This document shows positions 11,805 through 61,149 of a DNA stretch of 64,000 nt, one piece after another. The position numbers and the translations under genes are program-made. The notes under the pieces were generated by a model. The model was given only the letters and a program-made list of their open reading frames with translations. It ran no database searches and had not been told where the DNA came from. Source of the DNA: Macrostomum hystrix (Eukaryota; Animalia; Platyhelminthes); contig CATNEN010000011.1 of assembly GCA_950097015.1 (NCBI GenBank), positions 4,030,001-4,094,000 of the forward strand, written 5' to 3'. Numbering within the stretch: position 1 is the first letter of the stretch; every line of letters begins with the position of its first letter.

Positions 11805-12660
11805 ATTTGAGAATCTGGGATTAAGGTTTTGAGAATCTGAGAGTAGGGATTTGGGAATCTGGGAGTGGGTATTTGAGAATCTGGGAGTAGGGATTTGGGA
11901 ATCTGGGAGTAGGGATTTGAGAGTAGGAATTTGAGAATCTGGGAGTAGGAATTTGGGAATCTGGGAGTAGGAATTTGAGAATCTGGGAGTAGGGATTTGG
12001 GAATCTGGGAGTAGGGATTTGGGAATCTGGGAGTAGGGATTTGAGAGTAGGAATTTGAGTATCTGGGAGTAGGAATTTGAGAATCTGGGAATAGGAATTT
12101 GAGAATCTGGGAGTAGGGATTTGAGAATCTGGGAGTAGGGATTTGAGAATCTGGGAGTAGGGATTTGAGAATTTGGGAGTAGGGATTTGGGAATCTGGGA
12201 GTAGGGATTTGAGAGTAGGAATTTGGGAAGCTGGGAGTAGGAATTTGAGAATCTGGGAGTAGGGATTTGAGAATCTGGGAGTAGGGATCTGGGACTAGGG
12301 ATTTGAGAATCTGGGAGTAGGGATCTTGGAGTAGGGATTTGAGAATCTGGGAGTAGGGATTTGGGAGTAGGGATCTGGGAGTAGGGATGTGGGAGTAGGG
12401 ATCTGGGAGTAGGGATCTGGGAGTAGGGATCTGGGAGTAGGGATCTGGGAGTAGGGATTTAGTTATATGGGAGTAGGGATTCGGGAATATGGAAATTGGG
12501 ATTTGTGAACCTAAAAGTAGGGATTTAGGATTAGGATTGTGATTATATATACTGTGAGGCTGGTAGTATGGGAGTTTGGATTCAGGAATATGGAAGTTGG
12601 GATTTGTGAACCTAGCAGTAGGGATTTAGGAATCTGTGATTAGGGATTTACAAGGCTGGG
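11805..12660 (+). repeat. G-rich ~22-bp minisatellite (GGGAGTAGGGATTTGAGAATCT), grading into 13-bp units
   Basis: Visible tandem units with GGG tracts. Confidence 0.9.
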
Positions 12661-13207
12661 ATTAGTGAAATTTGTGGTTTCAATGTTTTTAGAAAAGAAA
12701 GGAAGAAATTATCAACTTGTTTATCACATTTCCCTTGACTCAAATTTAGGTATTCAGTGTGCCTTTGTGACATTCAAAGCGAAAGGTATTTACTAAATTT
12801 ATAAATGTATTTTACTTAACACATTGGGAGTTCATGGCAACCGCTAGTTATTGTGCACAGTAAAACAGATACTTTTAGTGACATGTTTTTCTGGGACTTT
12901 TATTAACTTACGACATTATTTGTAAACTGAGATTTATAGCAAACGCAGATCCTTGATTTGGCGTTTTGACCAGAGACTAAAGTTACTGAGAAAAACAAGG
13001 ACTACTTGATCCTTGCTAAAAAATCTGAAAATTCGTCATCGTTTGTCTTTAGTAAATAGAAATGAATTATTTAATTACGACAGTTAGCAGCACTAATATC
13101 AATCATGGCTATATTGAATCATCTTTAATGAGTAGTTTCAATAGATTTGTTTTATTTAACTAATCAAAATCAATCGACACTATTGATCCAGTTGGAGGAG
13201 CTCCGTG

Positions 13208-16200
13208 TTAGTGATCCAGGTTCTTCCACCAGATGGCTGAAAAGTGTTTAGTTTGAAACGTCTAATTTGACAGTAGGGGATCTGGGAGTAGGGGATTTGT
13301 GAGGCTGGGAGTGGGGGATTTGTGAAGCTGGGCGTATGGGATTTGTGAGGCTGGGAGTATGGGATTTGTGAGGCTGGGAGTATGGGGTTTTTGAGGCTGG
13401 GAGTGGGGTATTTGTGAAGCTTGGCGTATGGGATTTGTGAGGCTGGGAGTAGAAGATTTTTAAGGCTGGGAGTAGAAGATTTTTGAGGCTGGGAGTAGGG
13501 GATTTTTGAGGCTGGGAGTAGGGGATTTTTGAGGCTGGGAGTAGGGGATTTTTGAGGCTGGGAGTAGAAGATTTTTGAGGCTGGGAGTAGGGGATTTTTT
13601 AGGCTGGGAGTAGGCGATTTTTGAGGCTGGGAGTTGGGGATTTTTGAGGCTGGGAGTAGGCGATTTTTGAGGCTGGGAGTAGGCGATTTTTGAGGCTGGG
13701 AGTAGGCGATTTTCGAGGCTGGGAGTAGGGGATTTTTGAGGCTGGGAGTAGGGGATTTTTGAGGCTGGGAGTAGGCGATTTTTGAGGCTGGGAGTAGGCG
13801 ATTTTTGAGGCTGGGAGTAGGCGATTTTTGAGGCTGGGAGTAGGCGATTTTTGAGGCTGGGAGTAGGCGATTTTCGAGGCTGGGAGTAGGCGATTTTTGA
13901 GGCTGGGAGTATGGGATTTTTGAGGCTGGGAGTAGAAGATTTTTAAGGCTGGGAGTATGGGATTTTTGAGGTTGGGAGTAGGGGATTTGTGAGGCTGGGA
14001 GTATGGGATTTGTGAGGCTGGGAGTATGGGATTTGTGAAGCTGGGAGTATGGAATTTTTGAGGCTGTGAGTATGGGATTTGTGATGCTGGGAGTGGGGAT
14101 TTGTGAGGCGGGGAGTATGGGTTTTGTGAGGCTGGGAGTATGGGATTTGTGAGGCTGGGAGTGGGGGATTTGTGAGGCTGGGAGTGGGGGATTTGTGAGC
14201 CTGGGAGTATGGGATTTGTGAGGCTGGGAGTATGGGATTTGTGAGGCTGGAAGTACGTGATTTTAAAGGCAAAATATTTAAGAATTTAGGAAACTAGCAG
14301 TTAGGGATTTAGGAAGGCAGGGATTAAGGCTCCGAGTAGAGTAATTTCAAGGCTGGAGGAAAAGAGAAGGCTGAAGCTCACATGGCATTAGCAGTGTCTC
14401 AGTAGATTCTGGCGCGTCAGTGCAGTCGACCACAGCCCGACGGAGGTCGCGACTGACAGGACTTGGGAGAAACTTGCGCCAGCCGCCAAGAGATTCCCAG
14501 AACTCGTACAGCACCACACAGCCGGTCTCACGGTAGTGGCGAACACTCAGACTGCCGGGTGTGATGAGACAGGTGTGTCAAGTGGAGTGGTGTGATGAGA
14601 CAGGTGTGTCAATTGGAGTGGTGTGATGAGACATGTGTGTCAATTGGAGTGGTATGATGAGACAGGTGTGTCAATTGGAGTGGTATGATGAGACAGGTGT
14701 GTCAATTGGAGTGGTGTGATGAGACAGGTGTGTCAATTGGAGTGGTGTGATGAGACAGGTGTGTCAATTGGAGTGGTGTGATGAGACAGGTGTGTCAATT
14801 GGAGTGGTGTGATGAGACAGGTGTGTCAATTGGAGTGGTATGATGAGACAGGTGTGTCAATTGGAGTGGTGTGATGAGACAGGTGTGTCAATTGGAGTGG
14901 TGTAATGAGACAGGTGTGTCAAGTGGAGTGGTATGATGAGACAGGTGTGTCAATTGGAGTGGTATGATGAGACAGGTGTGTCAATTGGAGTGGTATGATG
15001 AGACAGGTGTGTCAATTGGAGTGGTGTGATGAGACAGGTGTGTCAATTGGAGTGGTGTGATGAGACAGGTGTGTCAATTGGAGTGGTATGATGAGACAGG
15101 TGTGTCAATTGGAGTGGTGTGATGAGACAGGTGTGTCAATTGGAGTGGTATGATGAGACAGGTGTGTCAATTGGAGTGGTGTAATGAGACAGGTGTGTCA
15201 AGTGGAGTGGTATGATGAGACAGGTGTGTCAATTGGAGTGGTATGATGAGACAGGTGTGTCAATTGGAGTGGTGTAATGAGACAGGTGTGTCAATTGGAG
15301 TGGTGTGATGAGACAGGTGTGTCAATTGGAGTGGTGTGATGAGACAGGTGTGTCAATTGGAGTGGTGTGATGAGACAGGTGTGTCAATTGGAGTGGTGTG
15401 ATGAGACAGGTGTGTCAATTGGAGTGGTATGATGAGACAGGTGTGTCAATTGGAGTGGTGTGATGAGACAGGTGTGTCAATTGGAGTGGTGTGATGAGAC
15501 AGGTGTGTCAAGTGGAGTGGTGTGATGAGACAGGTGTGTCAATTGGAGTGGTGTGATGAGACAGGTGTGTCAATTGGAGTGGTGTGATGAGACAGGTGTG
15601 TCAATTGGAGTGGTGTGATGAGACAGGTGTGTCAATTGGAGTGGTATGATGAGACAGGTGTGTCAATTGGAGTGGTATGATGAGACAGGTGTGTCAATTG
15701 GAGTGGTATGATGAGACAGGTGTGTCAAGTGGAGTGGTGTAATGAGACAGGTGTGTCAATTGGAGTGGTATGATGAGACAGGTGTGTCAATTGGAGTGGT
15801 GTAATGAGACAGGTGTGTCAATTGGAGTGGTATGATGAGACAGGTGTGTCAAGTGGAGTGGTATGATGAGACAGGTGTGTCAATTGGAGTGGTGTAATGA
15901 GACAGGTGTGTCAATTGGAGTGGTGTGATGAGACAGGTGTGTCTAGTGGAGTGGTGTGATGAGACAGGTGTGTCAATTGGAGTGGTGTGATGAGACAGGT
16001 GTGTCAATTGGAGTGGTGTGATGAGACATGTGTGTCAATTGGAGTGGTATGATGAGACAGGTGTGTCAATTGGAGTGGTATGATGAGACAGGTGTGTCAA
16101 TTGGAGTGGTGTGATGAGACAGGTGTGTCAATTGGAGTGGTGTGATGAGACAGGTGTGTCAATTGGAGTGGTGTGATGAGACAGGTGTGTCAATTGGAGT

Positions 16201-19200
16201 GGTATGATGAGACAGGTGTGTCAATTGGAGTGGTATGATGAGACAGGTGTGTCAATTGGAGTGGTATGATGAGACAGGTGTGTCAATTGGAGTGGTGTGA
16301 TGAGACAGGTGTGTCAATTGGAGTGGTATGATGAGACAGGTGTGTCAATTGGAGTGGTGTAATGAGACAGGTGTGTCAATTGGAGTGGTATGATGAGACA
16401 GGTGTGTCAAGTGGAGTGGTATGATGAGACAGGTGTGTCAATTGGAGTGGTGTAATGAGACAGGTGTGTCAATTGGAGTGGTGTGATGAGACAGGTGTGT
16501 CTAGTGGAGTGGTGTGATGAGACAGGTGTGTCAATTGGAGTGGTATGATGAGACAGGTGTGTCAATTGGAGTGGTGTGATGAGACAGGTGTGTCAATTGG
16601 AGTGGTGTGATGAGACAGGTGTGTCAAGTGGAGTGGTGTGATGAGACAGGTGTGTCAATTGGAGTGGTGTGATGAGACAGGTGTGTCAATTGGAGTGGTG
16701 TGATGAGACAGGTGTGTCAATTGGAGTGGTATGATGAGACAGGTGTGTCAATTGGAGTGGTGTGATGAGACAGGTGTGTCAATTGGAGTGGTGTGATGAG
16801 ACAGGTGTGTCAATTGGAGTGGTGTGATGAGACAGGTGTGTCAATTGGAGTGGTGTGATGAGACAGGTGTGTCAATTGGAGTGGTATGATGAGACAGGTG
16901 TGTCAATTGGAGTGGTGTGATGAGACAGGTGTGTCAATTGGAGTGGTGTGATGAGACAGGTGTGTCAAGTGGAGTGGTGTGATGAGACAGGTGTGTCAAT
17001 TGGAGTGGTGTGATGAGACAGGTGTGTCAATTGGAGTGGTGTGATGAGACAGGTGTGTCAATTGGAGTGGTATGATGAGACAGGTGTGTCAATTGGAGTG
17101 GTGTGATGAGACAGGTGTGTCAATTGGAGTGGTGTGATGAGACAGGTGTGTCAATTGGAGTGGTATGATGAGACAGGTGTGTCAATTGGAGTGGTGTGAT
17201 GAGACAGGTGTGTCAATTGGAGTGGTATGATGAGACAGGTGTGTCAATTGGAGTGGTGTGATGAGACAGGTGTGTCAATTGGAGTGGTGTGATGAGACAG
17301 GTGTGTCAATTGGAGTGGTGTGATGAGACAGGTGTGTCAATTGGAGTGGTATGATGAGACAGGTGTGTCAATTGGAGTGGTGTGATGAGACAGGTGTGTC
17401 AAGTGGAGTGGTGTGATGAGACAGGTGTGTCAATTGGAGTGGTGTGATGAGACAGGTGTGTCAATTCGAGTGGTGTGATGAGACAGGTGTGTCAATTGGA
17501 GTGGTGTGATGAGACAGGTGTGTCAATTGGAGTGGTGTGATGAGACAGGTGTGTCAATTGGAGTGGTGTAATGAGACAGGTGTGTCAATTGGAGTGGTGT
17601 GATGAGACAGGTGTGTCAATTGGAGTGGTGTGATGAGACAGGTGTGTCAATTGGAGTGGTGTGATGAGACAGGTGTGTCAATTGGAGTGGTGTGATGAGA
17701 CAGGTGTGTCAAGTGGAGTGGTATGATGAGACAGGTGTGTCTAGTGGAGAGGAGCAATCGGATGGTAATAATGGGATAATATAATAATTATAGTAATGTT
17801 TGCAAAGTTTATAGATAAGATTCAGGGAGACAGAAAATGAGTTTTGTTACTATGGTAACACGATACCGAGGGCTATAAAAGTGCACTTTGAATTCTCAAT
17901 GAAAGCAGATACTGTTGAAGCTTTGGCTCAGTGAATTCTGCCACTTCGCTTCATCATCATCCACTCTTTGAGCAAATAAAATACAGAACATTTCAGATTC
18001 TGTTACACCCGTGCAGCAATCATTGATCCGTGGCCAGTAAGTCCGGAATTTTCTGGATTTCATGTCTGTCATGAATTACCTAAACCAAAACAAATATCAT
18101 TGGTCAGATTTCTGAATCTAGAGGTCGGAAGTTCGAATTTCAGGCCGAGAAAAAAGTGTAAAATGAATTATTGAGACGCTCGTATGAAAGAGCTGTGAAA
18201 TTATCAGCTGCAGTAGAAACCTAGGTGATTGTCCATGGACTGAACATATGTACACAACCTTCCGTGGACTCTTGTGCGCATAAAGCAGTTCTATTAGTCA
18301 TCTCAATTTTAGTACTGAATTCGACCTGCTCATATTCTCTTCAATATTTCCTATTGCTTCATCTTCATCTGGCTGCTACGGCATTCTGCTACGTAGCTCT
18401 GACTGCTTATTGGCTAATCCTGCTTTGAGTAGGGAAAAATTAATTTATTTATGATAGAATCAGAGAAATAGAAATGATGAGAGTAGGAGAAAAACATTTT
18501 GGCATTGCCATGTTAAGAGGAGTGCATAATATAATAATATAATATAATTAAACAGAAATAATATACATCCATCCCTTTTGTACAAATTTACAATTGTGTA
18601 CGCATTGCCTAGTCTTAGAAATCGATACATTGTTTACACATTTCCCGATCTATCCCATAGAAATCTATCCCTTAATACACATCTCCCAAAAGAAACCAAC
18701 ATTTTGCTTTGGGGAAACATCTCCCAAACTTACAAGAGGCACGAGGTGACATTCTCCAGGTTGCTTGAGTACTTTTTAACGGCGGACAGGAAACCGTTGA
18801 GCAGGTCCTCCTGGACAGACAGCCGACGGCGTACAATGAGAATCTGCGCAGAGTGTAAGGGGGAAGAGAATTGTAAAAGGGAAGGGGTTTTTAAACGATG
18901 CGCTCACTAGAATAGGCAGCTCCTGTAGCTTTTGTATTAAGTGTGTGGGTCAGGCAAACCCTATCTAGATGATGGCTCAATGGGTTGGCCGAGCTCACTC
19001 GCTTGACAATTACTTTGAAAGCAAAAAGGCAAACCGCTTTTGATGTATTGACAAGTACTGGGGTCCAGTAGTACTCGTAGTTGGGGTGAATATTTGTAAG
19101 TTGAGCTATTTTTAGATGCAACAGTAAGTTCAAAAAATTATGAAGCTGTCTTCAAAATACTCGTACAAGAGTTTAGCTTTGTTTTTTGTCAAAAATTTAG

Positions 19201-21064
19201 ACCTAGAACAAGATAATATCATAAATCAATATCATATCTTAAAATTAACAAAATATCTTGATAATTTTTAATTTTCATATTTTAAATTGTCACCTCTCTC
19301 GTGTCTATCTTCTATCTCATCTCTCTCGTGTATTATCTCTCCCGTGTATTATCTCTCCCGTGTCTCATCTCTCCCGTGTATTATCTCTCCCGTGTCTCAT
19401 CTCTCTCGTGTATTATCTCTCCCGTGTATTATCTCTCCCGTGTCTCATCTCTCCCGTGTCTCATGTCTCCCGTGTCTCATGTCTCCCGTGTCTCATCTCT
19501 CCCGTGTCTCATCTCTCCCGTGTCTCATGTCTCCCGCGTCTTATCTCTCCTGTGTCTCATGTCTCCCGTGTCTGATCTCCCGTGTATTATCTCTCCCGTG
19601 TCTCATCTCTCCCGTGTCTCATCTCTCCCGTGTCTCATCTCTCCCGTGTCTCATGTATCCCGTGTCTTATCTCTCCCGTGTCTTATCTCTCCCGTGTCTC
19701 ATGTCTCCCGTGTCTTATCTCTCCCGTGTCTCATCTCTCCCATACCTCATGTCTCCCGCGTCTTATCTCTCCCGTGTCTCATGTCTCCCGTGTCTCATGT
19801 CTCCCGTGTCTCATCTCTCCCGTGTATTATCTCTCCCGTGTCTCATGTCTCCCGTGTCTTATCTCTCCCGTGTCTCATCTCTCCCGTGTCTCATGTCTCC
19901 CGTGTCTTATCTCTCCCGTGTCTTATCTCTCCCGTGTCTCATCTCTCCCGTGTCTCATCTCTCCCGTGTCTCATCTCTCCCGTGTCTCATGTCTCCCGTG
20001 TCTCATGTCTCCCGTGTCTCATCTCTCCCGTGTCTCATCTCTCCCGTGTCTCATGTCTCCCGCGTCTTATCTCTCCCGTGTCTCATGTCTCCCGTGTCTC
20101 ATGTCTCCCGTGTCTCATCTCTCCCGTGTCTCATCTCTCCCGTGTCTTATCTCTCCCGTGTCTCATCTCTCCCGTGTCTCATCTCTCCCGTGTCTCATCT
20201 CTCCCGTGTCTTATCTCTCCCGTGTCTCATGTCTCCCGTGTCTCATCTCTCTCCTATCTCATCTCTTCCGTGTCTCATCTCAACCATGTCTTATCTTTCC
20301 CGTGTCTCCTCTATCTCGTGTCTCATAAATTCCGTGTCTCATCTCTCCTGTCTAATTTCACCCGTGTGTCTTATCTCTATCGAGTCTTATCTCTCCCGTG
20401 TCCTCTTTTGAATTCAGTATTTTGTCTGAAATTCAGACTGACCAGCTAATTCACACATCTCAAAGCCAATGGAATAAGGCAGACAAGAAAGTAGTTTCTT
20501 CTCTTAAGATATTTTGTACTTCCATATTATATTTTAGGACTATATATTAGTAAAAATTCATCGCAACGGAACATTGCGAAGCGTAGCCAATTTCCTCGTT
20601 CTGCCCAGATCTCAAAGCTGTTCAATCTAAAAGGCTTTAGGACAATTATGACAAGAAATGCAAAGTCAAGACAGAGCACAGAATTATTCGCAGTATCACA
20701 CACACAGCGTAGTATGATTGATAGATGATAGAATCAAGAACTAAACACACGCACACACCGCCTCAAAAAAGGCCAAGCAATATAACAGCAGGCTGAAGAG
20801 ACTCTGAGCACAGTATAGGAGAGGAAAAATCAATTATTTAGTCATCTACTCAACCCGGATAAATAAATAAGCAGATTTTCTCCATCAACTGAATTTCTCC
20901 GTTTCTCCCAATGCCAAGTCGGCCTGGCAGCTTGGTTTCTACCCCAAAATCCCATTGGGAGCAGACACTGAGCTGTGCTCATATAGCACATTTGCACTTT
21001 CGTGAGCTTCATGCGCTAGGTGAGCACGCTGCATCTCTCTTCGCCTCATCCACTTCTGCTTCCA

Positions 21065-21113
<49 letters not shown>

Positions 21114-24100
21114 AGCGTTTGTGTGTTTGAGAGAGAGAGAGAGGAGAGAGAGAATTATTAGTGTCATATGCGCTCCATCATTAATCGATGAATACACGTT
21201 ATGAGCAAATGCCAAGGTGGAGGAGGTGGGGTTGGCTGCAGGCTGCTCAGATACTCTCAGGAACGGGCTCTGATGGATTTTGCGCTTCAATTTGGGATTT
21301 TCTGCTGCTGTCCTTGATTCTGCTGAGTTAGTTGATTCCGCTTTCTAGTCCAAATTAATTGCGTATCATTTTTCGCAGCTCGCTATTTTACTATTTATTT
21401 TATTCGTCAGCCCCAACTCGTTTCTGCCCAAGCTTTTTTGTACCGATTAGTCAAAATATTGCGGATTGCCAATCAGAAAAATCACTAATCAAAAATCGAT
21501 ACTAGTAGAATCTCGATATATCGTAATCATAATCCCTAATAAATAAATCAAACAATGAATTATTCAAAATACCAAAAAATCTGAATCCTAGATTTTCATA
21601 ATCCATATTTGTCAAAATCCCATTTGTCGAAATCCCAGTTTATCAAAATCCCAGTTTTTCGAAATCCCATCCAGTTAATCGAAATCCCAGTTTGTCAAAA
21701 TCCTAGTTTGTCGATATCCCAGTTTGTCGAAATCCTAGTTTGTCGAAATCCCAGTTTTTCGAAATCCCATCCAGTTAATCGAAATCCCAGTTTTTCGAAA
21801 TTCCAGTTTGTCAAAATCCCAGTTTGTCCAAATCCCAGTTTCTCCAAATCCCAGTTTGTCGAAATCCCAGTTTATCGAAATCCCAGTTTATCGAAATCCC
21901 AGTTTATCGAAATCCCAGTTTGTCGAAATCCCAGTTTCTCCAAATCCCAGTTTTTCAAAATCCCATCCAGTTAATCGAATTCCCAGTTTTTCGAAATTCC
22001 AGTTTGTCAAAATCCCAGTTTGTCCAAATCCCAGTTTCTCCAAATCCCAGTTTGTCCAAATCCCAGTTTCTCCAAATCCCAGTTTATCGAAATCCCAGTT
22101 TGTCAAAATCCCAGTTTATCGAAATCCCAGTTTGTCGAAATCCCAGTTATGTCGAAATCCCAGTTTATCGAAATCCCAGTTTGTCGAATTCCCAGTTTTT
22201 TCGAAATCCCAGTTTATCAAAATCCCAGTTTTTCGAAATCCCAGTTTGCCAAAATCCCAGTTTCTCCAAATCCCAGTTTGTCAAAATCCCAGTTTTTCGA
22301 AATCCCATCCAGTTAATCGAAATCCCAGTTTATCGAAATCCCAGTTTTTCGAAATCCCAGTTTGCCAAAATCCCAGTTTCTCCAAATCCCAGTTTGTCAA
22401 AATCCCAGTTTATCAAAATCCCAGTTTATCAAAATCCCAGTTTATCGAAATCCCATTTTGTAGAAATCCCAGTTTGCTGAAATGCCAGATTTTAATCCTG
22501 TCGAAATCCTAGTTTGCCGATTTAGAATTACCATTTTTCGCCCCACCACAAATCTGATAAGCTGATAAACAGCCGCTTAAACTACAGCACTTGCCGAAGC
22601 TCATAAATCCTCCATAGTCATCATTTCAACAGCCGAAATTCTCCCAGGAAAGCTTCATGCATCATAAACTGCCTTTCAACACGCGTAAAATCATAGAGCC
22701 AAGCAGATAGATCAGATTAATTTTGACATGTTCCAGGCAAGACGAAATGAATTCAGCATTTTCTCTGTTCTGTTCTGTTCTGTTCTGTTCTGTTCTGTTC
22801 TGTTCTGTTCTGTTCTGTTCTGTTCTGGTTCTGTTCTGTTGTGGTTCTGTTCTGTTGTGGTTCTGTTCTGTTGTGGTTCTGTTCTGTTCTGGTTCTGTTC
22901 TGTTGTGGTTCTGTTCTGGTTCTGTTCTGTTCTGTCATGTTCTGTTTTTTTCTGTTCTGTCATGTTCTGTTCTGTTCTGTTCTGTACTTTACTCGTAGAT
23001 TAGTTTCTAATGCAAGAGTGCATTCTGTAGTGCATTCTGATCCTAGATCCCATAAATCTCATAAAAGGCAGGAAACAGCTTAGATAATGGAACCGTACGT
23101 TGGCTATACTTAATAATCTTTCTGAAAGGCTTTGCTGTTTATTATTTCATAGTGACACAGTAACAGTTTAGCGTATTTAGATCGTTAATGAGTTAGGCTT
23201 TGATCCACTAATTAAATTATGGTTGCTATGCAAAGATTCAATTCATGCCAATTCAATCAATGCGAGCTCTGCCTCCCGTCTTCTGGTAACTAATGAAACT
23301 TTATACAGTTCCCAAATATCGACAGTACAGTAGTCGATAACGGCTGTTTTGTCGATAATCTACGAATACAGAAGACCCGCTGTGAAATTGTTGGCTGTGC
23401 AAATCGTTAAGTCTCTCAGTTGACAACAAATTCTTGAATTTTATGCAATTGTCCTCCTCGCATATCAATGTGCCTTTGGAACTGAGTACAGGTTGTTTTA
23501 TCGATAACTTAAGAATTTTGTGAATCTTTCAGATCACTAAGTGTCAGGTGCTTCAAAAACATCCTGAAGAGCCTAAAGACCTTCAAGACCCTGAAGACAT
23601 TCAAGACCCTGAAGACATTCAAGACCCTGAAGACCTTCAGGACCCTGAAGACCTTCAAGACCCTGAAGACCTTCAAGACCCTGAAGACCTTCAAGACCCT
23701 GAAGACCTTTGAGACCCTGAAGACCTTCAAGACCCTGAACACCTTTAAGACCCTGAAGACCTTTAAGACCCTGAAGACCATCAAGACCCTGAAGACCTTC
23801 AGGACCCTGAACACCTTCAAGACCCTGAAGACCTTCAAGACCCTGAAGACCTTTGAGACCCTGAAGACCTTCAGGACCCTGATGACCTTTGAGACCCTGA
23901 AGACCTTCAAGACCCTGATGACCTTTGAGACCCTGAAGACCTTCAAGACCCTGATGACTTCGAAGACTCACCATAGGCTCCTCTTCATCCAGGTTTGCCT
24001 CTTCTATTCGGCTGCGAGCCGTAGCCAGAGCTGTGCGGCTCTCCAGTCTATCCAGCAGTCGCTGCAGTCTCGCCACCTCCCAGTGCAGGCAGCCGTCTAA

Positions 24101-28304: not shown

Positions 28305-32603
<4,299 letters not shown>

Positions 32604-32859
32604 CTAAGACTCGTGCTGGCCAGGTGAATGAGTCCTATGGAATCTGGTTGATATGACACAGGTTTTCTCGTTGTTTTGTGTCTCGTTTTGTCTTTCCCCA
32701 GCCATCCAGTGTTTTAACGAGTATGTTGTGCGCGCTGTTGTTCATGTGCTCAAAACTGCAAAGTAATATATTATTTTTATTTAATACACGCAGTTAAGAC
32801 TTAACAAAGTCTATATTGTATTGCCGCTTTACAGCTCTCGCCGTAGATTTCTGGTGTTT

Positions 32860-33272
32860 GGTGTCTGATGAGGCAGGGAGTGAGGTGGGTGTCTGGTGAG
32901 ACAGGAAGCGAGGTGGGTGCCTGGTGAGTCAGGAAGTGGGGTGGGTGCCTGGTGAGTCAGGAAGTGGGGTGGGTGTCGGGTGAGACAGGAAGTGGGGTGA
33001 GTGTCTGGTGAGTCAGGCAGTGGGGTGGATGTCTGGCGAGGCAGGAAGTGAGTGGATGTCTGGCGAGGCAGGAAGTGGGTGGATGTCTGGTGAGACAGGA
33101 AGTGGGGTGGGTGTCTGGTGAGTCAGGAAGTGGGGTGGATGTCTGGCGAGGCAGGAAGTGGGTGGATGTCTGGTGAGACAGGAAGTGGGGTGGATGTCTG
33201 GCGAGACAGGAAGTGGGGTGGGTGTCTGGTGAGACAGGAAGTGGGGTGGGTGTCTGGCGAGGCAGGAAGTGA
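32860..33272 (+). repeat. ~28-bp G-rich minisatellite (GGGTGGGTGTCTGGTGAGACAGGAAGTG)
   Basis: Visible tandem units. Confidence 0.9.
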
Positions 33273-33794
33273 TGTGTGTGTCGTGTAAGGGAGGCAGTGA
33301 TGTTTGTGTTGTTCTGGAAAAAGAAAGAATGTGCTTTTTCAGGTATATTATTCTTTCTGGATTTTTAGAAAATACGCTCGGATTTTTAGAAACTTTATTA
33401 CGAGTGATTGCGTATATCGATCAAGAAAATATTGATAAGTGTTGCTTCGAGATAGCATGCTGTGTGATGTAGTGCACTATTGTCGCCTTGCAGCTTAGTA
33501 AAAATTATAACATGTTTCTTCCCAGCTTTAATGCGAAGTGTATTTACTTATAAGAAAATTTATTTGTTTTATTTTGTATTTTCATTCTTTTTACACAGCT
33601 TCTGTGAAGCATTTTTCTTTAGATCTACACTCGTATGAATATCATTATACTTTTAAAAGTGAGCATCCATTTTTTCTTGCGTCATTTTTCACGAACTAGT
33701 GGGGTGTTTATCAAACACTATGTAAAAGTCTGGAGCATTATATCTCGCTCCATTCCCCTCAAAACACACGCCTTCACCCACACCTACTTAAAGA

Positions 33795-34165
33795 CCCCCA
33801 CTTTTAGCCATTTTTGACACCCACCCCACTCTTTGCCACTTTAGAACCCCCCACTCCTTCACACACAACCTATTTAGACAGACAACCCTCACTCCTTGCA
33901 ACTTTAGACCCCAACCCCACTCCTGCCACTTTAGACCCCCACCCCACTCCTTGCAACTTTAGACCTCAAGCCCACTCCTGCCACTTTAGACCCCCACCCC
34001 ACTCCTTGCAACTTTAGACCCCAACCCCACTCCTGCCACTTTAGACCCCCACCCCACTCCTTGCAACTTTAGACCTCAAGCCCACTCCCTGCGACTTTAG
34101 ACGCCCACCTCACTCCCTGGCACTTTAGACCCCCACCCCACTCCTTGCCACTTAAGACCCCCACA
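33795..34165 (+). repeat. 27-bp C-rich minisatellite (CCCCACCCCACTCCTTGCCACTTTAGA)
   Basis: Visible tandem units. Confidence 0.9.
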
Positions 34166-34909
34166 TTAATCCCTGGCTGGCAAGACACAAACCTCACAGC
34201 ATCCACCTCGCCCCACTTTTATATTGAAACATACTTTCACTATAAAAGCCGCAGTAAGAACTAAAGAAAAATGCTTTAATCAATTCAAATATTATTTCCG
34301 GCTTTAATGCTTCTCGTGCTTATGCGTTTTCTCAGCGTCAATTAAATTGACTGACTGTCGTCTAAAAGTGAAGTCATTTATGTCTTCAGCATTCTCAATG
34401 CACCGAAATTCGCCAATGCGCTATTCTGCTCAATCAAAAAATTACTTAGATCGTCAATTTCTTTCAACGAATATTTATTCCTAGAAATTGAATTTCGAAA
34501 TTTTGTTTTTTTTTTTATGCAATCAACAGTTATTCGGGTTTGTACTTTAGCATATCGCACTGCTTTAGTGTCTAATTGTAGACCGTTTTGCAAATAGTCT
34601 ATATTTTCCTATAGGCTTTCTCGAATTTTACCCTCGGACTAAATGGAAATGTGTTTTTGTGTTGTCAGTTCCTTTTTTAGACCCGGCACCTGAATCTGTG
34701 CACACCTGACCTCAACCGTTTTTTGCTTAGCTCTAATATACATTTCTGTAGCCATTATAGAGGATTTTGTGACAACTTTTAAAACATCACTTTGCACTTT
34801 AAGAAACGAACATCTAACTATTAATCATGTTATACTTTTTTTAGTTTTTCTTTGTTAACACAAAAATTCTTAAGAAGATATTAAGATATCTTAAGATAGA
34901 TATGGTGCC

Positions 34910-37900
34910 TGAGGTGAAGTAGTGTCTAGTGACGTGGGCATCAAGTGAGGTGGGTGTCAAGTGAGGTGGGTGTCAAGTAAGGTGGGTGTCGAGTGAGGTG
35001 GGCATCAAGTGAGGTAGGTCTCTAGTGACGTGGGCATCAAGTGTGGTGGGCATCAAGTGAGGTGGGCATCAAGTGAGGTGGGTGTCGAGTGAGGTGGGCA
35101 TCAGGTGAGGTGGGTGTCTAGTGACGTGGGCATCAAGTGAGGTGGGTGTCGAGTGAGGTGGGAGTCAATTGAGGTGGGTGTCTAGTGACGTGGGCATCAA
35201 GTGAGGTGGGTGTCGAGTGAGGTGGGAGTCAATTGAGGTGAGTGTCTAGTGACGTGGGCATCAAGTGAGGTGGGTGTCGAGTGAGGTGGGCATCAAGTGA
35301 GGTGGGTGTCGAGTGAGGTGGGTGTCGAGTGAGGTGGGTATCAAGTGAGGTCAGTATAATGTGAGGTGGGTGTCAAGTGAGGTGGGTGCCGAGTGAGGTG
35401 GGCAACAAGTGAGGTGGGTGTCTAGTGACGTGGTCATCAAGTGAGGTGGGTGTCGAGTGAGGTGGGTGTCAAGTGAGGTGGGTGTCTAGTGACGTGGGCA
35501 TCAAGTGAGGTGGGTGTCGAGTGAGGTGGGTGTCAAGTGAGGTGGGTGTCAAGTGACGTGGGTGTCAAGTGAGGTGGGTGTCGAGTGAGGTCAGTGTAAT
35601 GGGAGGTTGGTGTCAAGTGAGGTGGGTGTCGAGTGAGGTGGGTGTCTAGTGACGTGGGCATCAAGTGAGGTGGGTGTCAAGTGAGGTGGGCATCAAGTGA
35701 GGTGGGTGTCGAGTGAGGTGGGAGTCAATTGAGGTGGGTGTCTAGTGACGTGGGCATCAAGTGAGGTGGGTGTCGAGTGAGGTGGGAGTCAATTGAGGTG
35801 AGTGTCTAGTGACGTGGGCATCAAGTGAGGTGGGTGTCGAGTGAGGTGGGCATCAAGTGAGGTGGGTGTCGAGTGAGGTGGGTGTCGAGTGAGGTGGGTA
35901 TCAAGTGAGGTCAGTATAATGTGAGGTGGGTGTCAAGTGAGGTGGGTGCCGAGTGAGGTGGGCAACAAGTGAGGTGGGTGTCTAGTGACGTGGTCATCAA
36001 GTGAGGTGGGTGTCGAGTGAGGTGGGTGTCAAGTGAGGTGGGTGTCTAGTGACGTGGGCATCAAGTGAGGTGGGTGTCGAGTGAGGTGGGTGTCAAGTGA
36101 GGTGGGTGTCAAGTGACGTGGGTGTCAAGTGAGGTGGGTGTCGAGTGAGGTCAGTGTAATGGGAGGTTGGTGTCAAGTGAGGTGGGTGTCGAGTGAGGTG
36201 GGTGTCTAGTGACGTGGGCATCAAGTGAGGTGGGTGTCAAGTGAGGTGGGCATCAAGTGAGGTGGGTGTCGAGTGAGGTGGGTGTCTAGTGAAGTGGGCA
36301 TCAAGTAAGGTGGGTGTCGAGTGAGGTGGGAGTCAATTGAGGTGAGTGTCTAGTGACGTGGGCATCAAGTGAGGTGGGTGTCTAGTGACGTGGGCATCAA
36401 GTGAGGTGGGTGTCGAGTGAGGTGGGTGTCGAGTGAGGTGGGTATCAAGTGAGGTCAGTATAATGTGAGGTGGGTGTCAAGTGAGGTGGGTGTCGAGTGA
36501 GGTGGGCAACAAGTGAGGTGGATGTCGAGTGAGGTGGTTGTCAAGTGAGGTGGGTGTCAAGTGACGTGGGTGTCAAGTGAGGTGGGTGTCGAGTGAGGTC
36601 AGTGTAATGGGAGGTTGGTGTCAAGTGAGGTGGGTGTCGAGTGAGGTGGGTGTCTAGTGACGTGGGCATCAAGTGAGGTGGGTGTCAAGTGAGGTGGGCA
36701 TCAAGTGAGGTGGGTGTCGAGTGAGGTGGGTGTCTAGTGAAGTGGGCATCAAGTAAGGTGGGTGTCGAGTGAGGTGGGAGTCAATTGAGGTGAGTGTCTA
36801 GTGACGTGGGCATCAAGTGAGGTGGGTGTCGAGTGAGGTGGGCATCAAGTGAGGTGGGTGTCGAGTGAGGTGGGAGTCAATTGAGGTGAGTGTCTAGTGA
36901 CGTGGGCATCAAGTGAGGTGGGTGTCGAGTGAGGTGGGCATCAAGTGAGGTGGGTGTCGAGTGAGGTGGGTATCAAGTGAGGTCAGTATAATGTGAGGTG
37001 GGTGTCAAGTGAGGTGGGTGTCGAGTGAGGTGGGCAACAAGTGAGGTGGATGTCGAGTGAGGTGGGTGTCAAGTGAGGTGGGTGTCAAGTGACGTGGGTG
37101 TCAAGTGAGGTGGGTGTCGAGTGAGGTCAGTGTAATGGGAGGTTGGTGTCAATTGAGGTGGGTGTCGAGTGAGGTGGGTGTCTAGTGACGTGGGCATCAA
37201 GTGAGGTGGGTGTCAAGTGAGGTGGGCATCAAGTGAGGTGGGTGTCGAGTGAGGTGGGTGTCTAGTGAAGTGGGCATCAAGTAAGGTGGGTGTCTAGTGA
37301 CGTGGGCATCAAGTGAGGTGGGTGTCAAGTGAGGTGGGTGTCAAGTAAGGTGGGTGTCGAGTGAGGTGGGCATCAAGTGAGGTAGGTCTCTAGTGAGGTG
37401 GGTGTCGAGTGAGGTGGGTGTCTAGTGAAGTGGGCATCAAGTAAGGTGGGTGTCGAGTGAGGTGGGAGTCAATTGAGGTGAGTGTCTAGTGACGTGGGCA
37501 TCAAGTGAGGTGGGTGTCGAGTGAGGTGGGCATCAAGTGAGGTGGGTGTCGAGTGAGGTGGGTGTCGAGTGAGGTGGGTATCAAGTGAGGTCAGTATAAT
37601 GTGAGGTGGGTGTCAGGTGAGGTGGGTGTCGAGTGAGGTGGGCAACAAGTGAGGTGGGTGTCTAGTGACGTGGTCATCAAGTGAGGTGGGTGTCGAGTGA
37701 GGTGGGTGTCAAGTGAGGTGGGTGTCAAGTGACGTGGGTGTCAAGTGAGGTGGGTGTCGAGTGAGGTCAGTGTAATGGGAGGTTGGTGTCAAGTGAGGTG
37801 GGTGTCGAGTGAGGTGGGTGTCAATTGAGGTGGGTAATAAGTGAAGTGGGTGTCAAGTGAGGTGGGTATCAAGTAAGGTGGGTATCAAGTGAGGTCAGTG

Positions 37901-38085
37901 TCATGTGAGGTGGGTGTCAAGTGAGGTGGGTGTCAAATGAGGTGGGTGTCGAGTGAGGTGGGTGTCAAGTGAGGTGGGTGTCAAATGAGGTGGGTGTCAA
38001 GTGAGTTGGGTGTCAAGTGAGGTGGGTGTCTAGTGACGCGGGCATCAAGTGAGGTGGGTGTCAAGTGTGTCAACTAGTGAGGTGG
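34910..38085 (+). repeat. 16-bp satellite (GTGAGGTGGGTGTCAA), ~3.1 kb, with higher-order repeats
   Basis: The landmark variant GTCAGTATAAT occurs at 35350, 35910, 36454, 36982 and 37590; spacings of 560, 544, 528 and 608 are all multiples of 16. Confidence 0.95.
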
Positions 38086-39349: not shown

Positions 39350-39384
<35 letters not shown>

Positions 39385-39486
39385 CGACTGGGTAGACAGG
39401 TAGTGAATTGGGTAGTGTCCACTACTACTATCGCTATTACAAGTGCACTATTATGACTAACTTTATTACTACTACTACTACTACTA

Positions 39487-39552
<66 letters not shown>

Positions 39553-39562
39553 ATACTACTAC
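39350..39562. repeat. (CTG)n and long (CTA)n microsatellites
   Basis: Direct read. Confidence 0.95.
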
Positions 39563-39810: not shown

Positions 39811-41720
39811 ATGTCCTCAACTCTAAACTCTACTCTAGTCCTCTCTGTCCTGCTCATCTGGTCTCAAAACGCCTCGGTGGTTCGCGCAGTCGGCTGCTAC
39901 AAATTCAGTCGAGCTCGCGAACTTTGCGCTGTGAAACTGCCACCGGCAGTGGGCTGGCGAGACGGCAACGCCACATTTCGCCGACTTGGCGGCATCGCCG
40001 ATGAGCGAGTCTGCGCGCTGATGTGCGCCGCCAGCGGAGCGTCCAGGTGCTCGGTGTTCCAGCTGCTGGCACCGATGTCCAGTATAGACTCGACCATTGT
40101 GGACACCAGCACTTGCCTTCTGGGCGACGCCTGCGATCTTGTCGCCAGTTGGCAGTGGAACTCCGGTGCTGCGTGCCTCACGAAACAGCTCGATGCTAGG
40201 CCCGAATGCAATCCGACTGCAGCCACCACCGCTACGACTGCAGCCACCACCGCTACGACTGCAGCCACCACCGCTACGACTGCAGCCACCACCGCTACGA
40301 CTGCAGCCACCACCGCTACGACTGCAGCCACCACCGCTACGACTGCAGCCACCACCGCTACGACTGCAGCCACCACCGCTAAGACTGCAGCCACCACCGC
40401 TACGACTGCAGCCACCACCGCTACGACTGCAGCCACCACCGCTACGACTGCAGCCACCACCGCTACGACTGCAGCCACCACCGCTAAGACTGCAGCCACC
40501 ACCGCTACGACTGCAGCCACCACCGCTACGACTGCAGCCACCACCGCTACGACTGCAGCCACCACCGCTAAGACTGCAGCCACCACCGCTACGACTGCAG
40601 CCACCACCGCTACGACTGCAGCCACCACCGCTACGACTGCAACCAGGACTTTTACTTCTGTACCTCCCTACGTGATTACAGGTGAGTGAAATGAAATTTT
40701 ACTGTTGAATGCATTTGTTTAATTGGTTTGTGCACTGGTGTCATTAAATGTATCATAGCAATTAGGCAAAAAATACTAGATAGGAATTTTTCCCCTGTTC
40801 AGGCGTATTTTTCACCTGTTCAGATGGACGTTTTACCTGTTCAAGTAGAAGTTGAATTTCGCCCTTTTTTGCTACTATTTCTTGGAACTCACTAAAACCG
40901 TCTCGCATGTCCAGCTCCAAACGACGGCGCCAGTGTCCAGTCCGGTTCTTTGCAATCCTACGACATCGGCACAACTGGCTGTTACAAAATCGCAGCCTAC
41001 GGAGCTCGCGGCGGAGCTGCTGGCAGTTACTCGACGCCTGGCAACGGCGCCTTCATCGCCGGACACTTCCTGCTCGACGCCGGTCAAAAATTGGTATTCG
41101 TTATTGGCAAACCGGGCCGGAGCTCCAACGGCGGCGGAAACGATGCCGGAGGCGGCGGCGGCGGCACTTTTGTCTACTTGGCCAGCGACAGAGCTCTGCT
41201 AGTGGCAGCAGGTGGTGGCGGCGGCAGCGGCAGCAGCTACGCTTGTGCCGGCTACGATGGAAGCGCCGAGAAACCCGGCGTCGGTGGCGGCGGCAGCGCC
41301 GGAGGAGCCGGCGGTGTCAACGGCGCCGGAGGCTCAGCTAAGAAATTCGGCAGCGGCAACGGTGGCGCTGGCGCCGGCTGGCTGACAGCCGGAGAGGACG
41401 CCAGCGGTAATAAGAGAGGCCTTGGTGGCGAGACCAGCACCTCTGATTGGACCGGTGGCAACGGAGACTCCGCGTTCGGCGGCTACGGCGGCGGTGGCGG
41501 CGGCGGCGGCGGTGGAAGCTCCTCCGGGGGCGGCGGCGGCGGGGGCTACTCAGGCGGCGGCGGCGGCGACGGCGACTGCGGCGGAGGCGGCGGCGGCGGC
41601 AGCTACTTGGCTAGCAGCGCTGCCAATGTTGAGCGAATCGCCGGTGGCAATTCAGAGCTGAACGGCAGGGCCTCCGTCCAGCTTGTTGGGCCGTCAAACT
41701 CCTTGAACTGTATGCGGTGA
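39811..41720 (+). CDS. Secreted protein: signal peptide, 8-Cys PAN/apple-like domain, Thr/Ala mucin stalk, ALK/LTK-type glycine-rich domain. Exons 39811-40681 and 40915-41720 (~558 aa).
   Basis: Hydrophobic N-terminus (TLVLSVLLIWSQNASVVRA). C-x3-C-x7-C-x2-F...C-x-L pattern. Phase-1 intron ACAG|GTGAGT..CCAG|CT. Exon 2 has QSYDIGTTGCYKIAAYGARGG, GHFLLDAGQKLVFVIGKPG, GGGGGGTFVY..LLVAAGGGGG, FGGYGGGGGG, GGGGGYSGGGG and GGGGSYL, collinear with the ALK/LTK GRD. No TM segment or kinase before the stop. Confidence 0.8.
40216..40641 (+). repeat. 21-bp coding repeat (TAATTAT), ~20 copies, mucin-like
   Basis: ACTGCAGCCACCACCGCTACG units with a periodic ACG>AAG (Lys) variant. Confidence 0.95.
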
Positions 41721-42332
41721 AACTGTCACTCTAGCTTGAATGCAGCGGTTGGCTTCGCTATTTAATTTTAACCGGGACATCGGGTGTTCGATTCTCCGCA
41801 CAGTGGAAACACTGTTTCATTGTGCCACTGACCAAAACACTAACTTCTCTATTTTCCTTTTAATCCCACCATAATGTTGGCTCAAAATCAAATCCTGTTT
41901 GTCTCTCTACCCATTAAATAAATTTTAAATAAACGAGTGTTGTTGCAACACTTTAGTGGGTTATGCCATCGTGGAACGATCATGGAATGATCGCGAGTCA
42001 TGAGCAGCACCAACTCTAACTTAGAATAAGTGCAGGGCAAAAGTAGTCTATGGCCTAATCTTGCTTCATATTCGTAAGTGAGCAAGCACATTCAGGTTTA
42101 TAGCATGGCTGCATATGAAACGCGCTGTATAGTTGGTATGGACTTTTCATTTTATAAATCAATGATCACCGAACTTTAGCGAGTGCGGAATTCGCTGATT
42201 ATACTCCAGGCTGCTCACCTGCGCCTCACCTGCGCCTCACCTGCGCCTCACCTGCGCCTCATAGATGCATCGCCACTGACAAGCCGTCAAACCGATTCCA
42301 CTCTTCAAGCACAAGCACTAGAAAGGCCCTAA

Positions 42333-43394
42333 ATGGCCAGGGCTATGCAAGAACAAGATTTGAAAGGCTTGGCTAACCGACTTTTGAAGTTCGACGCTAG
42401 TGACTTTTATAACCATGTGCCGCTGACTGCAACAGAATGTCTGATTGTGTGCCACATGGCCACGGAGGCTATGCGCAAAACAGAACTCTGCATCACTGTG
42501 AAGGCACCGATTAACATTGTTGGCGACCTGCACGGCCAGTTTCACGATCTGCTGCGCATCTTTGACTCGCTTGGCCAACCGCCGCAGTCCCGCTTTCTTT
42601 TCCTCGGTGACTACATCGACCGGGGCAAGTACTCGCTGGAGGTCATGACTCTGCTGTTTGTGCTCATGCTGCTCTACCCCGACTCGGTGTACCTGCTTCG
42701 CGGCAACCATGAGACTGCGAACATCTGCTGTCGCTACGGATTCAAGGACGAGCTTAAAATGCGCTTCGTCAAATCGCAGGCGCACGGAGTTCTCGGCGGC
42801 TTCGTCAGAACGTTCCAGTGGATGCCAATGTGCGCCATCGTCGACAGCCAAATTTTCTGCTGCCACGGTGGCATCTCGCCGAACTTCTTGCTGCAGCCTT
42901 TCAATAAAAGTCCCAGTCAGCAGGGCAATGTGAAAATCTTAAACGAATTCAAGAAGCCTATTGAACCATCTCCACCGGGTGTCCTGTGTGACATAATCTG
43001 GTCCGACCCGACGAGTACTAGCTTCAGTACTCAGTTCAACGCCACATCCGAAGTCGCCACGGAAGCCAAATGGCTGCCGAACAAGCGTGGCTGTTCGTTC
43101 CTGTTCACTGCACCTGCCCTCGAGGATGTGATGCGCGTGTTCCAGACTTATATGCTTGTCAGGGGCCACCAGGTTGCGCAAGGTGGCTACTTGACTCATC
43201 ACAATCGACGCTGCGTGACCGTGTTCAGCGCGCCAGGCTATTGCGGCATCGAAGATAATTCGGGCAGCGTCCTGCAAGTTGACCACAGGCAGGACAGCAA
43301 GACCCATCCCGGCAGCTTCTTCCTTCTTAGGCCTCTTGAACGAGACCCCGCGGCTATCAATTGCTTGTTTTGGTCGGAGCTAAGCGATGTTTAA
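42333..43394 (+). CDS. Divergent intronless PP1-like Ser/Thr phosphatase (PPP family), copy A, 353 aa
   Basis: GDLHGQ, GDYIDRG, LRGNHE, HGGISP, DIIWSDP, RGCSF, LVRGHQ, TVFSAPGYCG; the metal and catalytic residues are intact. Confidence 0.93.
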   Translation: MARAMQEQDLKGLANRLLKFDASDFYNHVPLTATECLIVCHMATEAMRKTELCITVKAPINIVGDLHGQFHDLLRIFDSLGQPPQSRFLFLGDYIDRGKYSLEVMTLLFVLMLLYPDSVYLLRGNHETANICCRYGFKDELKMRFVKSQAHGVLGGFVRTFQWMPMCAIVDSQIFCCHGGISPNFLLQPFNKSPSQQGNVKILNEFKKPIEPSPPGVLCDIIWSDPTSTSFSTQFNATSEVATEAKWLPNKRGCSFLFTAPALEDVMRVFQTYMLVRGHQVAQGGYLTHHNRRCVTVFSAPGYCGIEDNSGSVLQVDHRQDSKTHPGSFFLLRPLERDPAAINCLFWSELSDV

Positions 43395-59705: not shown

Positions 59706-61149
59706 TCAGGCACAAGGTCCACTATCAGCTGGCCCGACTAGTTGAATCTGCGCCCGACCCGCGCTTGCGACCGAGTTGACGCTGAAGCTGACTCGCCTAG
59801 CAAAGGGCGCGGCGTAGCTGCTTCCAGCGCCGCCGCCGACGCCGCTTCCGGAGCCACCGAAGCCGCCAGCGAAGCCGCCGCCGCCCCCACCACCGGCGGA
59901 ATTGCCGCCGCCTCCTCCGGCGCCGCCACCGCCGCCGTAGCCGCCAAAGCCAGTGCCACTGGAGTCGCCGCCTGTCCAGCCTGTGGCGCGTCCGAATGAT
60001 CCGCCGAAGCCGCGTTTGTTGCCCAAACAGCTGGCTCCAGACTCTAGCCAGCCGGCGCCGCCGCCGCCTCCGCCACTGTCGCTGGAAGCTAAGCCGCCAC
60101 TGCCAACGTCACTGCGTGGTTTGACGGAGACTGCGCTCTGACCAGGCGCTGATGTGCCAGCTCCGCCTCCACCGCCAGCTGCCAGCAGGAGTTGCCAGTC
60201 AACGCTGTCGTTGCCGACGCTGCTCCGACGATAATAGACGAACGTTCCACCACCGCCGCCGCCGCCGTTAAACGAAAAGCTGATGCCGCTGGCGCCCTCG
60301 CAGCCGAGAACGATGGTCAACTGCAGTGCTGTGGAAGCCAACGCTGGCAGCGAGAGATGAGCTGTCACAATGCCGCCGAGGCCACCAACACCGCCCACTG
60401 CGCTACCACCCGCTGCTCCCCAGGCGGTGATGGCATAGCATCCGGCTGAAGCCGATAACGAGTAGTATTTTGGACTGCCGCTTCTGCTGGTGGACTGCGC
60501 TGAAACTGGTAGGATTGAGTGATTGAGTGATTACACCATTTTGTCAGAGAGAGTACACCAATGAGAGAGGATTGAGCACACAATAAGTGGCAGTGGCAGA
60601 GTGAGAAAACCAGGGACAGGCTGAGCACACCAGGCGTGACCAGGGACAGTGAGCACACCAGGGACAGTGAGCACACCAGTATCAGGGTGAGCACACTAGG
60701 CACAGGGTGAGCACTTTCGGACAAACAGAGCCATGAATCTTGCCATAGATGACGGGAGCGCTGGTAGTCGGCATAGGACGAACACAGTCGGGTCGTCCGT
60801 TCAGCACTTGTGAGAAACACGCAGATGCGCTGGAGTGGTTTGTGAACCATTTCTCGGCTAGATCGCATGGCGATCCCAGTAGGCAGCTGACATTCGTAGC
60901 GTCGGCATCATCAGCGAGAATCAATTGGAACACTGAGCAAAGCACCGGTCCGCTAGCAGCGCATTCGACAGCGCAAACTCTCGCGTCCTTTGCGCCAGTG
61001 ATTCGGCGAAATGTACCCGAACTCGACGTCACAGTGGAAGTGACGCACAGGTTTTCCACCTTGGTAAAAGTGACCGCAGCGGCCGTGACTGCAACAGTAA
61101 AACAAATCACGGGCAAGAAGCTAAGTTGAAAGTTAATGTTGATTTTCAT
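59706..61149 (-). CDS. Secreted PAN-like plus ALK/LTK-type glycine-rich-domain protein, paralog 2, without the mucin stalk. Exons 61149-60744 and 60499-59706 (~399 aa), joined by a GC-AG intron.
   Basis: Signal peptide; eight Cys aligned with paralog 1 (RVCAVECAASGPVLCSVFQL~RVCALMCAASGASRCSVFQL). Exon 2 reads GCYAITAWGAAGG, GGGGGGTFVY, LLLAAGGGGG, GAGWL..GNKRGFGG, GFGGYGGGGG and GGGAGSSY. Confidence 0.8.

Follow-up and report, generated by a model that had tools for sequence, protein, structure and literature searches.

A Macrostomum hystrix gene predicted to encode a secreted, kinase-less protein with an ALK/LTK-type glycine-rich domain and a PAN/apple-like head

The stretch of Macrostomum hystrix DNA analysed here, hereafter called the window, is 64,000 nucleotides long (assembly GCA_950097015.1, contig CATNEN010000011.1, positions 4,030,001 to 4,094,000 of the forward strand) and contains two related genes. 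The first, gene A, occupies positions 39811-41720 and runs in two exons from an ATG to a TGA; its product is composed of a signal-peptide-like start, a Cys-rich head, a Thr/Ala-rich stalk and a C-terminal glycine-rich domain (GRD) of the type found in the receptor kinases ALK and LTK. The second, paralog B, lies at 59706-61149 on the opposite strand, has an intron of the same phase and is devoid of a stalk (Table 1). Both had been proposed in an original prediction made from the sequence alone and both hold as genes. The accompanying idea of an unrecognised architecture and an undescribed family has to be abandoned: proteins with a signal peptide, PAN_1 and PF12810 but no kinase are abundant in cnidarians, a Macrostomum lignano paralog is already present in UniProt, and gene A is a new, divergent representative, from a flatworm, of a kind of protein that is already known though uncharacterised.

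Table 1. Coordinates (positions in the window) of gene A, of its parts and of paralog B.
Feature	Position	Strand	Description
Gene A	39811-41720	+	Two exons; product of ~558 amino acids (290 + 1 split codon + 267)
Gene A, exon 1	39811-40681	+	ATG at 39811; donor ACAG/GTGAGT (slash, exon-intron border)
Gene A, signal-peptide-like N-terminus	39811-39888	+	Residues 1-26, h-region LVLSVLLIW; from hydrophobicity
Gene A, Cys-rich PAN/apple-like head (probable)	39889-40209	+	Residues 27-133; 8 conserved Cys; core C-x3-C-x7-C-SVFQL...C-LLG
Gene A, Thr/Ala-rich mucin-like stalk	40210-40681	+	(TAATTAT)n with three TAATTAK variants; tandem repeat proper at 40214-40645
Gene A, intron	40682-40914	+	233 bp, GT-AG, phase 1, between stalk and GRD; acceptor TGTCCAG/CT; frame restored
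Gene A, exon 2	40915-41720	+	Predicted ALK/LTK-type GRD (TNF-like sandwich and Gly-rich bundle), LVGPxxSxxC tail; TGA at 41718-41720
Gene A, lineage-specific GRD Cys pair	40980-40982 and 41709-41711	+	Equivalents in paralog B and A0A1I8IMG2
Paralog B, exon 1	60744-61149	-	Signal peptide (predicted), 8-Cys head, short linker, no stalk
Paralog B, intron	60500-60743	-	Phase 1, same position as in gene A; probable GC donor TATG/GCAAGA
Paralog B, exon 2	59706-60499	-	GRD ending ...QIQLVGPADSGPCA, then stop

Gene A is a real and intact gene, with both exons open and canonical splice sites. A non-working gene, either a decaying duplicate or a model mis-joined across a GGC-rich microsatellite, could be evoked on account of a (CGG)n-like stretch in exon 2 (41477-41600), of the evolutionarily young, near-perfect 21-bp array that encodes the stalk and of the lack of an RNA joint in the contigs of public runs. 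This is nevertheless very unlikely, as the splice sites restore the frame between the two open exons, conservation extends to motifs outside the Gly runs, the fold is predicted with confidence and both the C-terminal tail and the intron phase are shared with paralog B; moreover, the public-run contigs cover exon 2 and its 3' flank but not the intron. Across the gene A stop and into the 3' flank (41616-41900), the sequence is read through colinearly by contigs of two public runs.

The N-terminus of gene A contains the sole strongly hydrophobic window of the protein (best KD19 value of 1.55 at residue 9), and an equivalent segment is found in paralog B (KD19 of 2.09); it is signal-peptide-like. 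Beyond the N-terminus, the KD19 hydrophobicity scan does not detect any segment of transmembrane grade in either exon of gene A, and a Pfam scan does not detect any match to kinase, MAM, LDLa or EGF families, in agreement with the prediction of a protein with a signal-peptide-like start and neither transmembrane segment nor kinase. The gene A stop codon is located 10-12 residues past the last GRD strand, without any EGF-like module after the GRD, and the next gene, an unrelated PP1-like phosphatase, begins 613 bp further on. The C-terminal tail LVGPxxSxxC is common to gene A, paralog B and the transcript-derived M. lignano protein A0A1I8IMG2, and in the latter two the protein ends directly after it.

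The assignment of exon 2 was approached by sequence, profile and structure comparisons, all searches and fold predictions for gene A being run per exon and not with the spliced, full-length protein as a single query. Exon 2 has a Gly content of 34.8%, and the Pfam family PF12810 (ALK_LTK_GRD) scores 13 bits on it (E=0.1), below the Pfam cut-off of 24.5; the GRD of paralog B is likewise below the Pfam threshold and that of A0A1I8IMG2 is not recognised by Pfam either. When PDB sequences are searched with phmmer, however, LTK (7nx0) is matched by exon 2 at E=1.3e-3, and this match sits in the non-Gly strands (YxIxAYGAxGG...), so that it is not driven by composition. With a cut-off of E<=1e-3, a word-indexed search returns 588 relatives, the best at 7e-24; many of them are bacterial proteins with PEP-CTERM or PF12810 and a few are animal. 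PF12810 is carried by 21 of the 68 relatives that were aligned, and the profile built from this alignment matches ALK (7nx3) over the whole domain at E=1.6e-39, the TNF-like part alone reaching 68 bits with a bias of 0.1. With the same 68-relative alignment as input, the AlphaFold2 model of exon 2 has a predicted local distance difference test score (pLDDT) of 94.3 and a predicted template modelling score of 0.92. The 21 best Foldseek matches of this model in the PDB are all GRDs of ALK or LTK (E from 2e-10 to 2e-4, template modelling score, TM-score, of 0.52-0.67); they are followed, after a large gap, by phage tail proteins. Fold neighbours in the ESM Atlas have TM-scores by query of 0.78-0.89, with values of 0.78-0.85 for the carriers of PF12810. 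Finally, the GRD motifs Y-x-I-x-A-x-GA-x-GG, GGGGGG-TFV, AAGGGGG, GGAGW, GGGGGGYSGGG and GGGGSY are present as invariant or nearly invariant alignment columns. Judged from the modelled fold and from these profiles, exon 2 encodes a genuine GRD of the ALK/LTK type, as had been predicted for the C-terminus of the protein, rather than a GGC microsatellite.

The Macrostomum GRDs are distinctive in two respects. The N-terminal FT-x-x-GA-x-G-x-x-GPT strand/helix segment, present in ALK and in cnidarian proteins, is absent in all three of them. Conversely, two Cys residues, one belonging to the GC[YF]xI motif of the first core strand and one to the C-terminal tail, are common to all three and absent in the cnidarian protein P0113; the two may be joined by a lineage-specific disulfide that would hold the N- and C-terminal strands together. 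The Macrostomum GRD has its best full-length match in P0001 (38% identity over 94%), from European Nucleotide Archive entry ERZ25070786 (contig ctg113456l, 2639-3631), a contig whose sparse and short open reading frames are eukaryote-like. This hints at the existence of similar GRD exons in another eukaryote; no PAN-like exon is recognisable upstream of P0001.

Paralog B, of 399 amino acids, is 40% identical to gene A in the head and 48% in the GRD. At the site homologous to the GT donor of gene A it has a probable GC donor, and no well-matching in-phase GT donor is found nearby; the junction made with this GC donor is supported by A0A1I8IMG2, which continues directly after '...IY'. The GRDs of paralog B and A0A1I8IMG2 are 61% identical. 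A0A1I8IMG2 belongs to the same family, with a head 53% identical to that of gene A and the same C-terminal tail, but it is devoid of a stalk and its database entry begins with translated upstream sequence. An older M. lignano model of the same 90% cluster (P0122, UPI0007A20D54, 1892 amino acids) contains a PAN-like/GRD member at residues 230-713 joined to two copies of pyruvate kinase (PF00224, E=2e-220). It was considered as a GRD-kinase fusion and rejected: the model seems to fuse neighbouring genes into a chimera, and pyruvate kinase is a metabolic enzyme, not a tyrosine kinase.

The head is about 107 residues long and contains nine Cys in gene A, eight of which are invariant among the three family members; the gene A head is 42-50% identical to those of the two other members. 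An exhaustive phmmer search with this head among 1.84 billion representatives yields a single match (P0121, E=2.5e-15, 53% identity), which is the UniRef entry A0A1I8IMG2, named 'Apple domain-containing protein', from M. lignano, and a word search with region 27-135 of exon 1 does not yield any. At the level of the sequence, this shows a lineage-restricted head. By inspection, its core motif VCAxxCAASGxxRCSVFQL...CLLG runs parallel to the cnidarian PAN_1 motif CAQxCLSxxxCxSFNF...CELN, with a spacing of C-x3-C-x7-C-SVFQL...C-LLG in Macrostomum versus C-x3-C-x5-C-SFNF...C-ELN in cnidarians. The ten best named language-model neighbours of the head are all PAN clusters (0.93), and the structural neighbours of the A0A1I8IMG2 head, as modelled in the ESM Atlas, belong mostly to the PAN clan (PAN_1, PAN_2, MANEC and factor XI; TM-score of 0.53-0.60). 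The head is thus a probable PAN/apple-like module, as suggested by its Cys motif, its language-model and Atlas neighbours and the UniProt name, which together give the assignment moderate support. The 8-Cys PAN/apple-like module that had been proposed stands in part: the eight conserved Cys, the motif and the neighbours agree with it, and the ninth Cys of gene A and the profile comparisons detailed below do not. PAN domains in general serve for adhesion and binding.

The stalk, announced as a Thr/Ala stretch of about 140 amino acids, is indeed present, but with a total length of 157 amino acids, 143 of which derive from a 21-bp unit repeated 20.6 times with 98% matches (Tandem Repeats Finder, 40214-40645). 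With 82 Thr and 61 Ala among its 157 residues (52% Thr), it is mucin-like in composition and probably heavily O-glycosylated. It is absent from both paralog B and A0A1I8IMG2, and its absence from paralog B leads us to consider the gene A repeat as a recent insertion or expansion.

Kinase-less proteins combining PAN and GRD are an existing, automatically catalogued architecture that is common in corals and sea anemones. The transcript-derived protein P0113, of 369 amino acids, is one of the relatives retrieved with exon 2; it has a PAN_1 domain (E=9e-8) followed by PF12810, and when it is used as a query it retrieves 1854 relatives, the top ones being PAN_1 + PF12810 proteins of about 370-400 amino acids from Exaiptasia, Acropora, Stylophora, Porites, Montipora and Nematostella. 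These include P0123 of Exaiptasia diaphana, P0150 of Stylophora pistillata, P0191 and P0211 of Nematostella vectensis and Acropora entries named 'ALK/LTK receptor-like'. They begin with a signal peptide, continue with a 4-Cys PAN that borders immediately on the GRD and have no kinase, and kinase-less PAN + GRD proteins also form clusters in the ESM Atlas. The cnidarian proteins are known at their sources under names as different as 'ALK/LTK tyrosine kinase receptor-like', 'receptor protein-tyrosine kinase', 'Glycine rich protein', 'WAG22 antigen-like' and 'loricrin-like'. P0123, P0135, P0148, P0152 and P0191, among others, are called 'ALK/LTK tyrosine kinase receptor(-like)' at NCBI and 'receptor protein-tyrosine kinase' in UniRef, although they contain only PAN_1 and PF12810; these kinase names look like a propagated mis-annotation. 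In the literature, we found no study of this family in Macrostomum or of the cnidarian PAN-GRD proteins.

The Macrostomum and cnidarian families resemble each other in the order of their modules (signal peptide, small Cys-containing head, of probable PAN type in Macrostomum, and C-terminal GRD), in the absence of transmembrane segment and kinase, in their similar size (about 370-400 amino acids versus 399 for paralog B) and in being multigene. They differ by the head, which has four Cys and is recognised as PAN_1 by Pfam in cnidarians, whereas it has eight conserved Cys and no Pfam match in Macrostomum; by the GRD, which keeps a FVFTTLGAxGxxGPT segment in cnidarians, whereas in Macrostomum it is without this segment but has an extra Cys after the last strand; and by the mucin-like repeat stalk, a feature of gene A compared with the cnidarian proteins. 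In a quick maximum-likelihood tree of GRDs other than those of ALK, cnidarians form a clade of their own (support 88), the three GRDs from Macrostomum cluster weakly (76) and are placed among metagenomic ones, and nothing joins the two groups. One could imagine that the flatworm and cnidarian associations of a PAN-type head with a GRD were assembled independently, and that the Macrostomum family constitutes a new class of extracellular recognition or adhesion proteins, whose Gly-rich tip would bind glycans or microbial surfaces as phage fibres do and whose GRD exon would perhaps be of microbial origin; we consider this extended scenario as doubtful.

The comparison with ALK and LTK themselves bears on the idea, also part of the original prediction, that the gene A product acts in ALK signalling as a soluble decoy or carrier, whose free GRD would sequester or present the ligand of a worm ALK-type receptor. 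Soluble decoy ectodomains do exist for other receptor families, and the gene A GRD has the same fold as the ligand-binding domain of ALK/LTK (7nx1, 7nx3, 7n00 and 7lrz; 7lir for SCD-2 of Caenorhabditis elegans). However, beyond this fold, gene A is devoid of the MAM, LDLa and EGF-like modules, of the transmembrane helix, of the kinase and of the N-terminal strand/helix segment of these receptors, and structural alignments between its GRD and theirs display only 19-28% identity. The decoy hypothesis is weakened by this marginal similarity to ALK/LTK (E=1e-3; 22-28% identity in structural alignments), by the absence of both the FTxxGAxGxxGPT segment and an EGF-like module after the GRD, and by the closer proximity of the gene A GRD to metagenomic and bacterial GRDs than to cnidarian ones. 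In addition, a multi-copy family with a mucin stalk is not what would be expected of a decoy. The ALKAL/AUG ligands are furthermore reported to be a vertebrate innovation, Jeb and HEN-1 being unrelated to them (PMC7851593). A decoy or carrier role is thus unlikely.

Other carriers of the fold indicate that the GRD is a promiscuous extracellular module. In an Atlas fold search, its partners are PAN_1/fn2 and EGF in Cnidaria, MAM and kinase in chordates, and Hint, Ig-like, FG-GAP, Ricin-B lectin and DUF4215 in bacteria, where GRD proteins also end in PEP-CTERM or Por-secretion tails. At the level of the sequence, exon 2 is matched best by bacterial and phage GRD proteins (E down to 7e-24, 38-50% identity). 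Like gene A, these proteins bear the GRD as a secreted or surface-exposed terminal module, but they combine it with other partner modules and sorting signals and have neither PAN head nor mucin stalk. Among phages, the fibre protein gp24 of cyanophage Pam3 (7ypx) is a weak Foldseek match of the exon 2 model (E of 0.29, row 23). In this fibre, the TNF-like and Gly-rich fold constitutes the receptor-binding tip, its Gly stem being conserved and its distal tips variable, and it was reported to be structurally similar to C. elegans ALK (PMC9608196).

The original prediction also listed ice- or surface-binding by the polyglycine bundle among its hypotheses. Polyglycine-II bundles do serve as ice-binding faces in the snow-flea antifreeze protein, and a flat polyglycine face of gene A could in principle bind ice or a mineral surface in the same way. 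The fold matched by exon 2 is, however, the ALK-type TNF-like and Gly-rich one and not the snow-flea bundle, no antifreeze protein is found among the Foldseek structural matches and nothing in the sequence suggests ice or mineral binding, which makes this role extremely improbable.

We favour the reading, with a probability of roughly 0.55, that the gene A product is a secreted, kinase-less, modular extracellular protein with a binding or cross-linking role, belonging to a Macrostomum-specific multigene family, rather than a signalling receptor. The protein would be exported and act outside the cell, where it could belong, as a binding or cross-linking constituent, to a secretion or to a surface coat such as mucus, glycocalyx, adhesive, or egg or eggshell material; mucus, adhesive and eggshell were also among the possibilities listed in the original prediction. 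Its two ends, the PAN-like head and the rigid Gly-rich domain, would then be binding modules spaced by the extended, glycosylated stalk. Such a role is suggested by the adhesive nature of PAN modules, by the mucin-like character of the Thr-rich repeat, by the use of the fold for target binding in both the Pam3 fibre tip and ALK, and by the occurrence of the fold in exported bacterial proteins, next to lectin and Ig-like modules.

An immune or microbe-binding role is a close rival of this reading. The gene A product could be a secreted, lectin-like pattern-recognition protein. It would use variable tip loops of its Gly-rich domain to recognise foreign surfaces, and the family would diversify by duplication. 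The architecture of the phage-fibre receptor-binding tip, with its conserved Gly stem and variable tips (PMC9608196), is in line with this possibility, and so are the low identity of the two copies in the window (only 40-48%) and the joining of the bacterial fold to Ricin-B lectin domains. Both readings nonetheless overlap, each of them being an extracellular binding role, and the family is represented by three sequences only; we regard microbe binding as possible, though on the unlikely side.

Several points weigh against the favoured reading of a secreted binding or cross-linking protein. Cleavage of the signal peptide and glycosylation of the stalk are both deduced from composition. The stalk is missing from both paralog B and A0A1I8IMG2, so that a spacer is not essential to the family. 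No Pfam family, PAN_1, PAN_2 and PAN_4 included, matches the heads of gene A, paralog B or A0A1I8IMG2 at E<=1, and a profile of the head searched against the PDB does not match any PAN but only marginal, unrelated entries. When the Macrostomum head is compared with the cnidarian PAN by hhalign, the probability is of about 4% or less, irrespective of whether whole or trimmed alignments and global or local modes are used. The AlphaFold2 model of the head, made from a 3-sequence alignment, displays a strand-helix-strand order that fits PAN but has a pLDDT of 40.6 and is unreliable, and Foldseek returns only noise with it. Finally, no splice joint of gene A is present in the public-run contigs, in which exon 2 and the 3' flank are represented only in part, no run being recorded as RNA.

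Gene A adds a bilaterian lineage, that of flatworms, to the little-noticed secreted proteins that have the ALK/LTK fold without a kinase, and supports the view of this fold as a general extracellular binding module, also used by receptor kinases, rather than an ALK-specific one. It also points to an annotation problem, as the kinase-less cnidarian relatives are named kinases and the Macrostomum GRD, being under the Pfam threshold, is left unannotated. Since Macrostomum is amenable to RNA interference and in situ hybridisation, it offers a first opportunity to test the function of free GRD proteins of this kind.

Around gene A, the window contains an intronless open reading frame for a PP1-like phosphatase of 353 amino acids (42333-43394, + strand; Metallophos, E=5e-30), which has its own ATG and begins 613 bp past the gene A stop. 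Upstream, two microsatellites, (TGC)11 and (TAC)32, are located at 39350-39562, about 250-460 bp before the gene A start codon. Very large minisatellite arrays occupy positions 11790-17749, 19315-22492 and 30876-38067, with examples such as a 31-bp unit repeated 103 times (14558-17749) and a 32-bp unit repeated 98 times (34922-38067); these arrays account for the plateaus of 0.6-0.7 that the composition profile of the window displays in GC skew.

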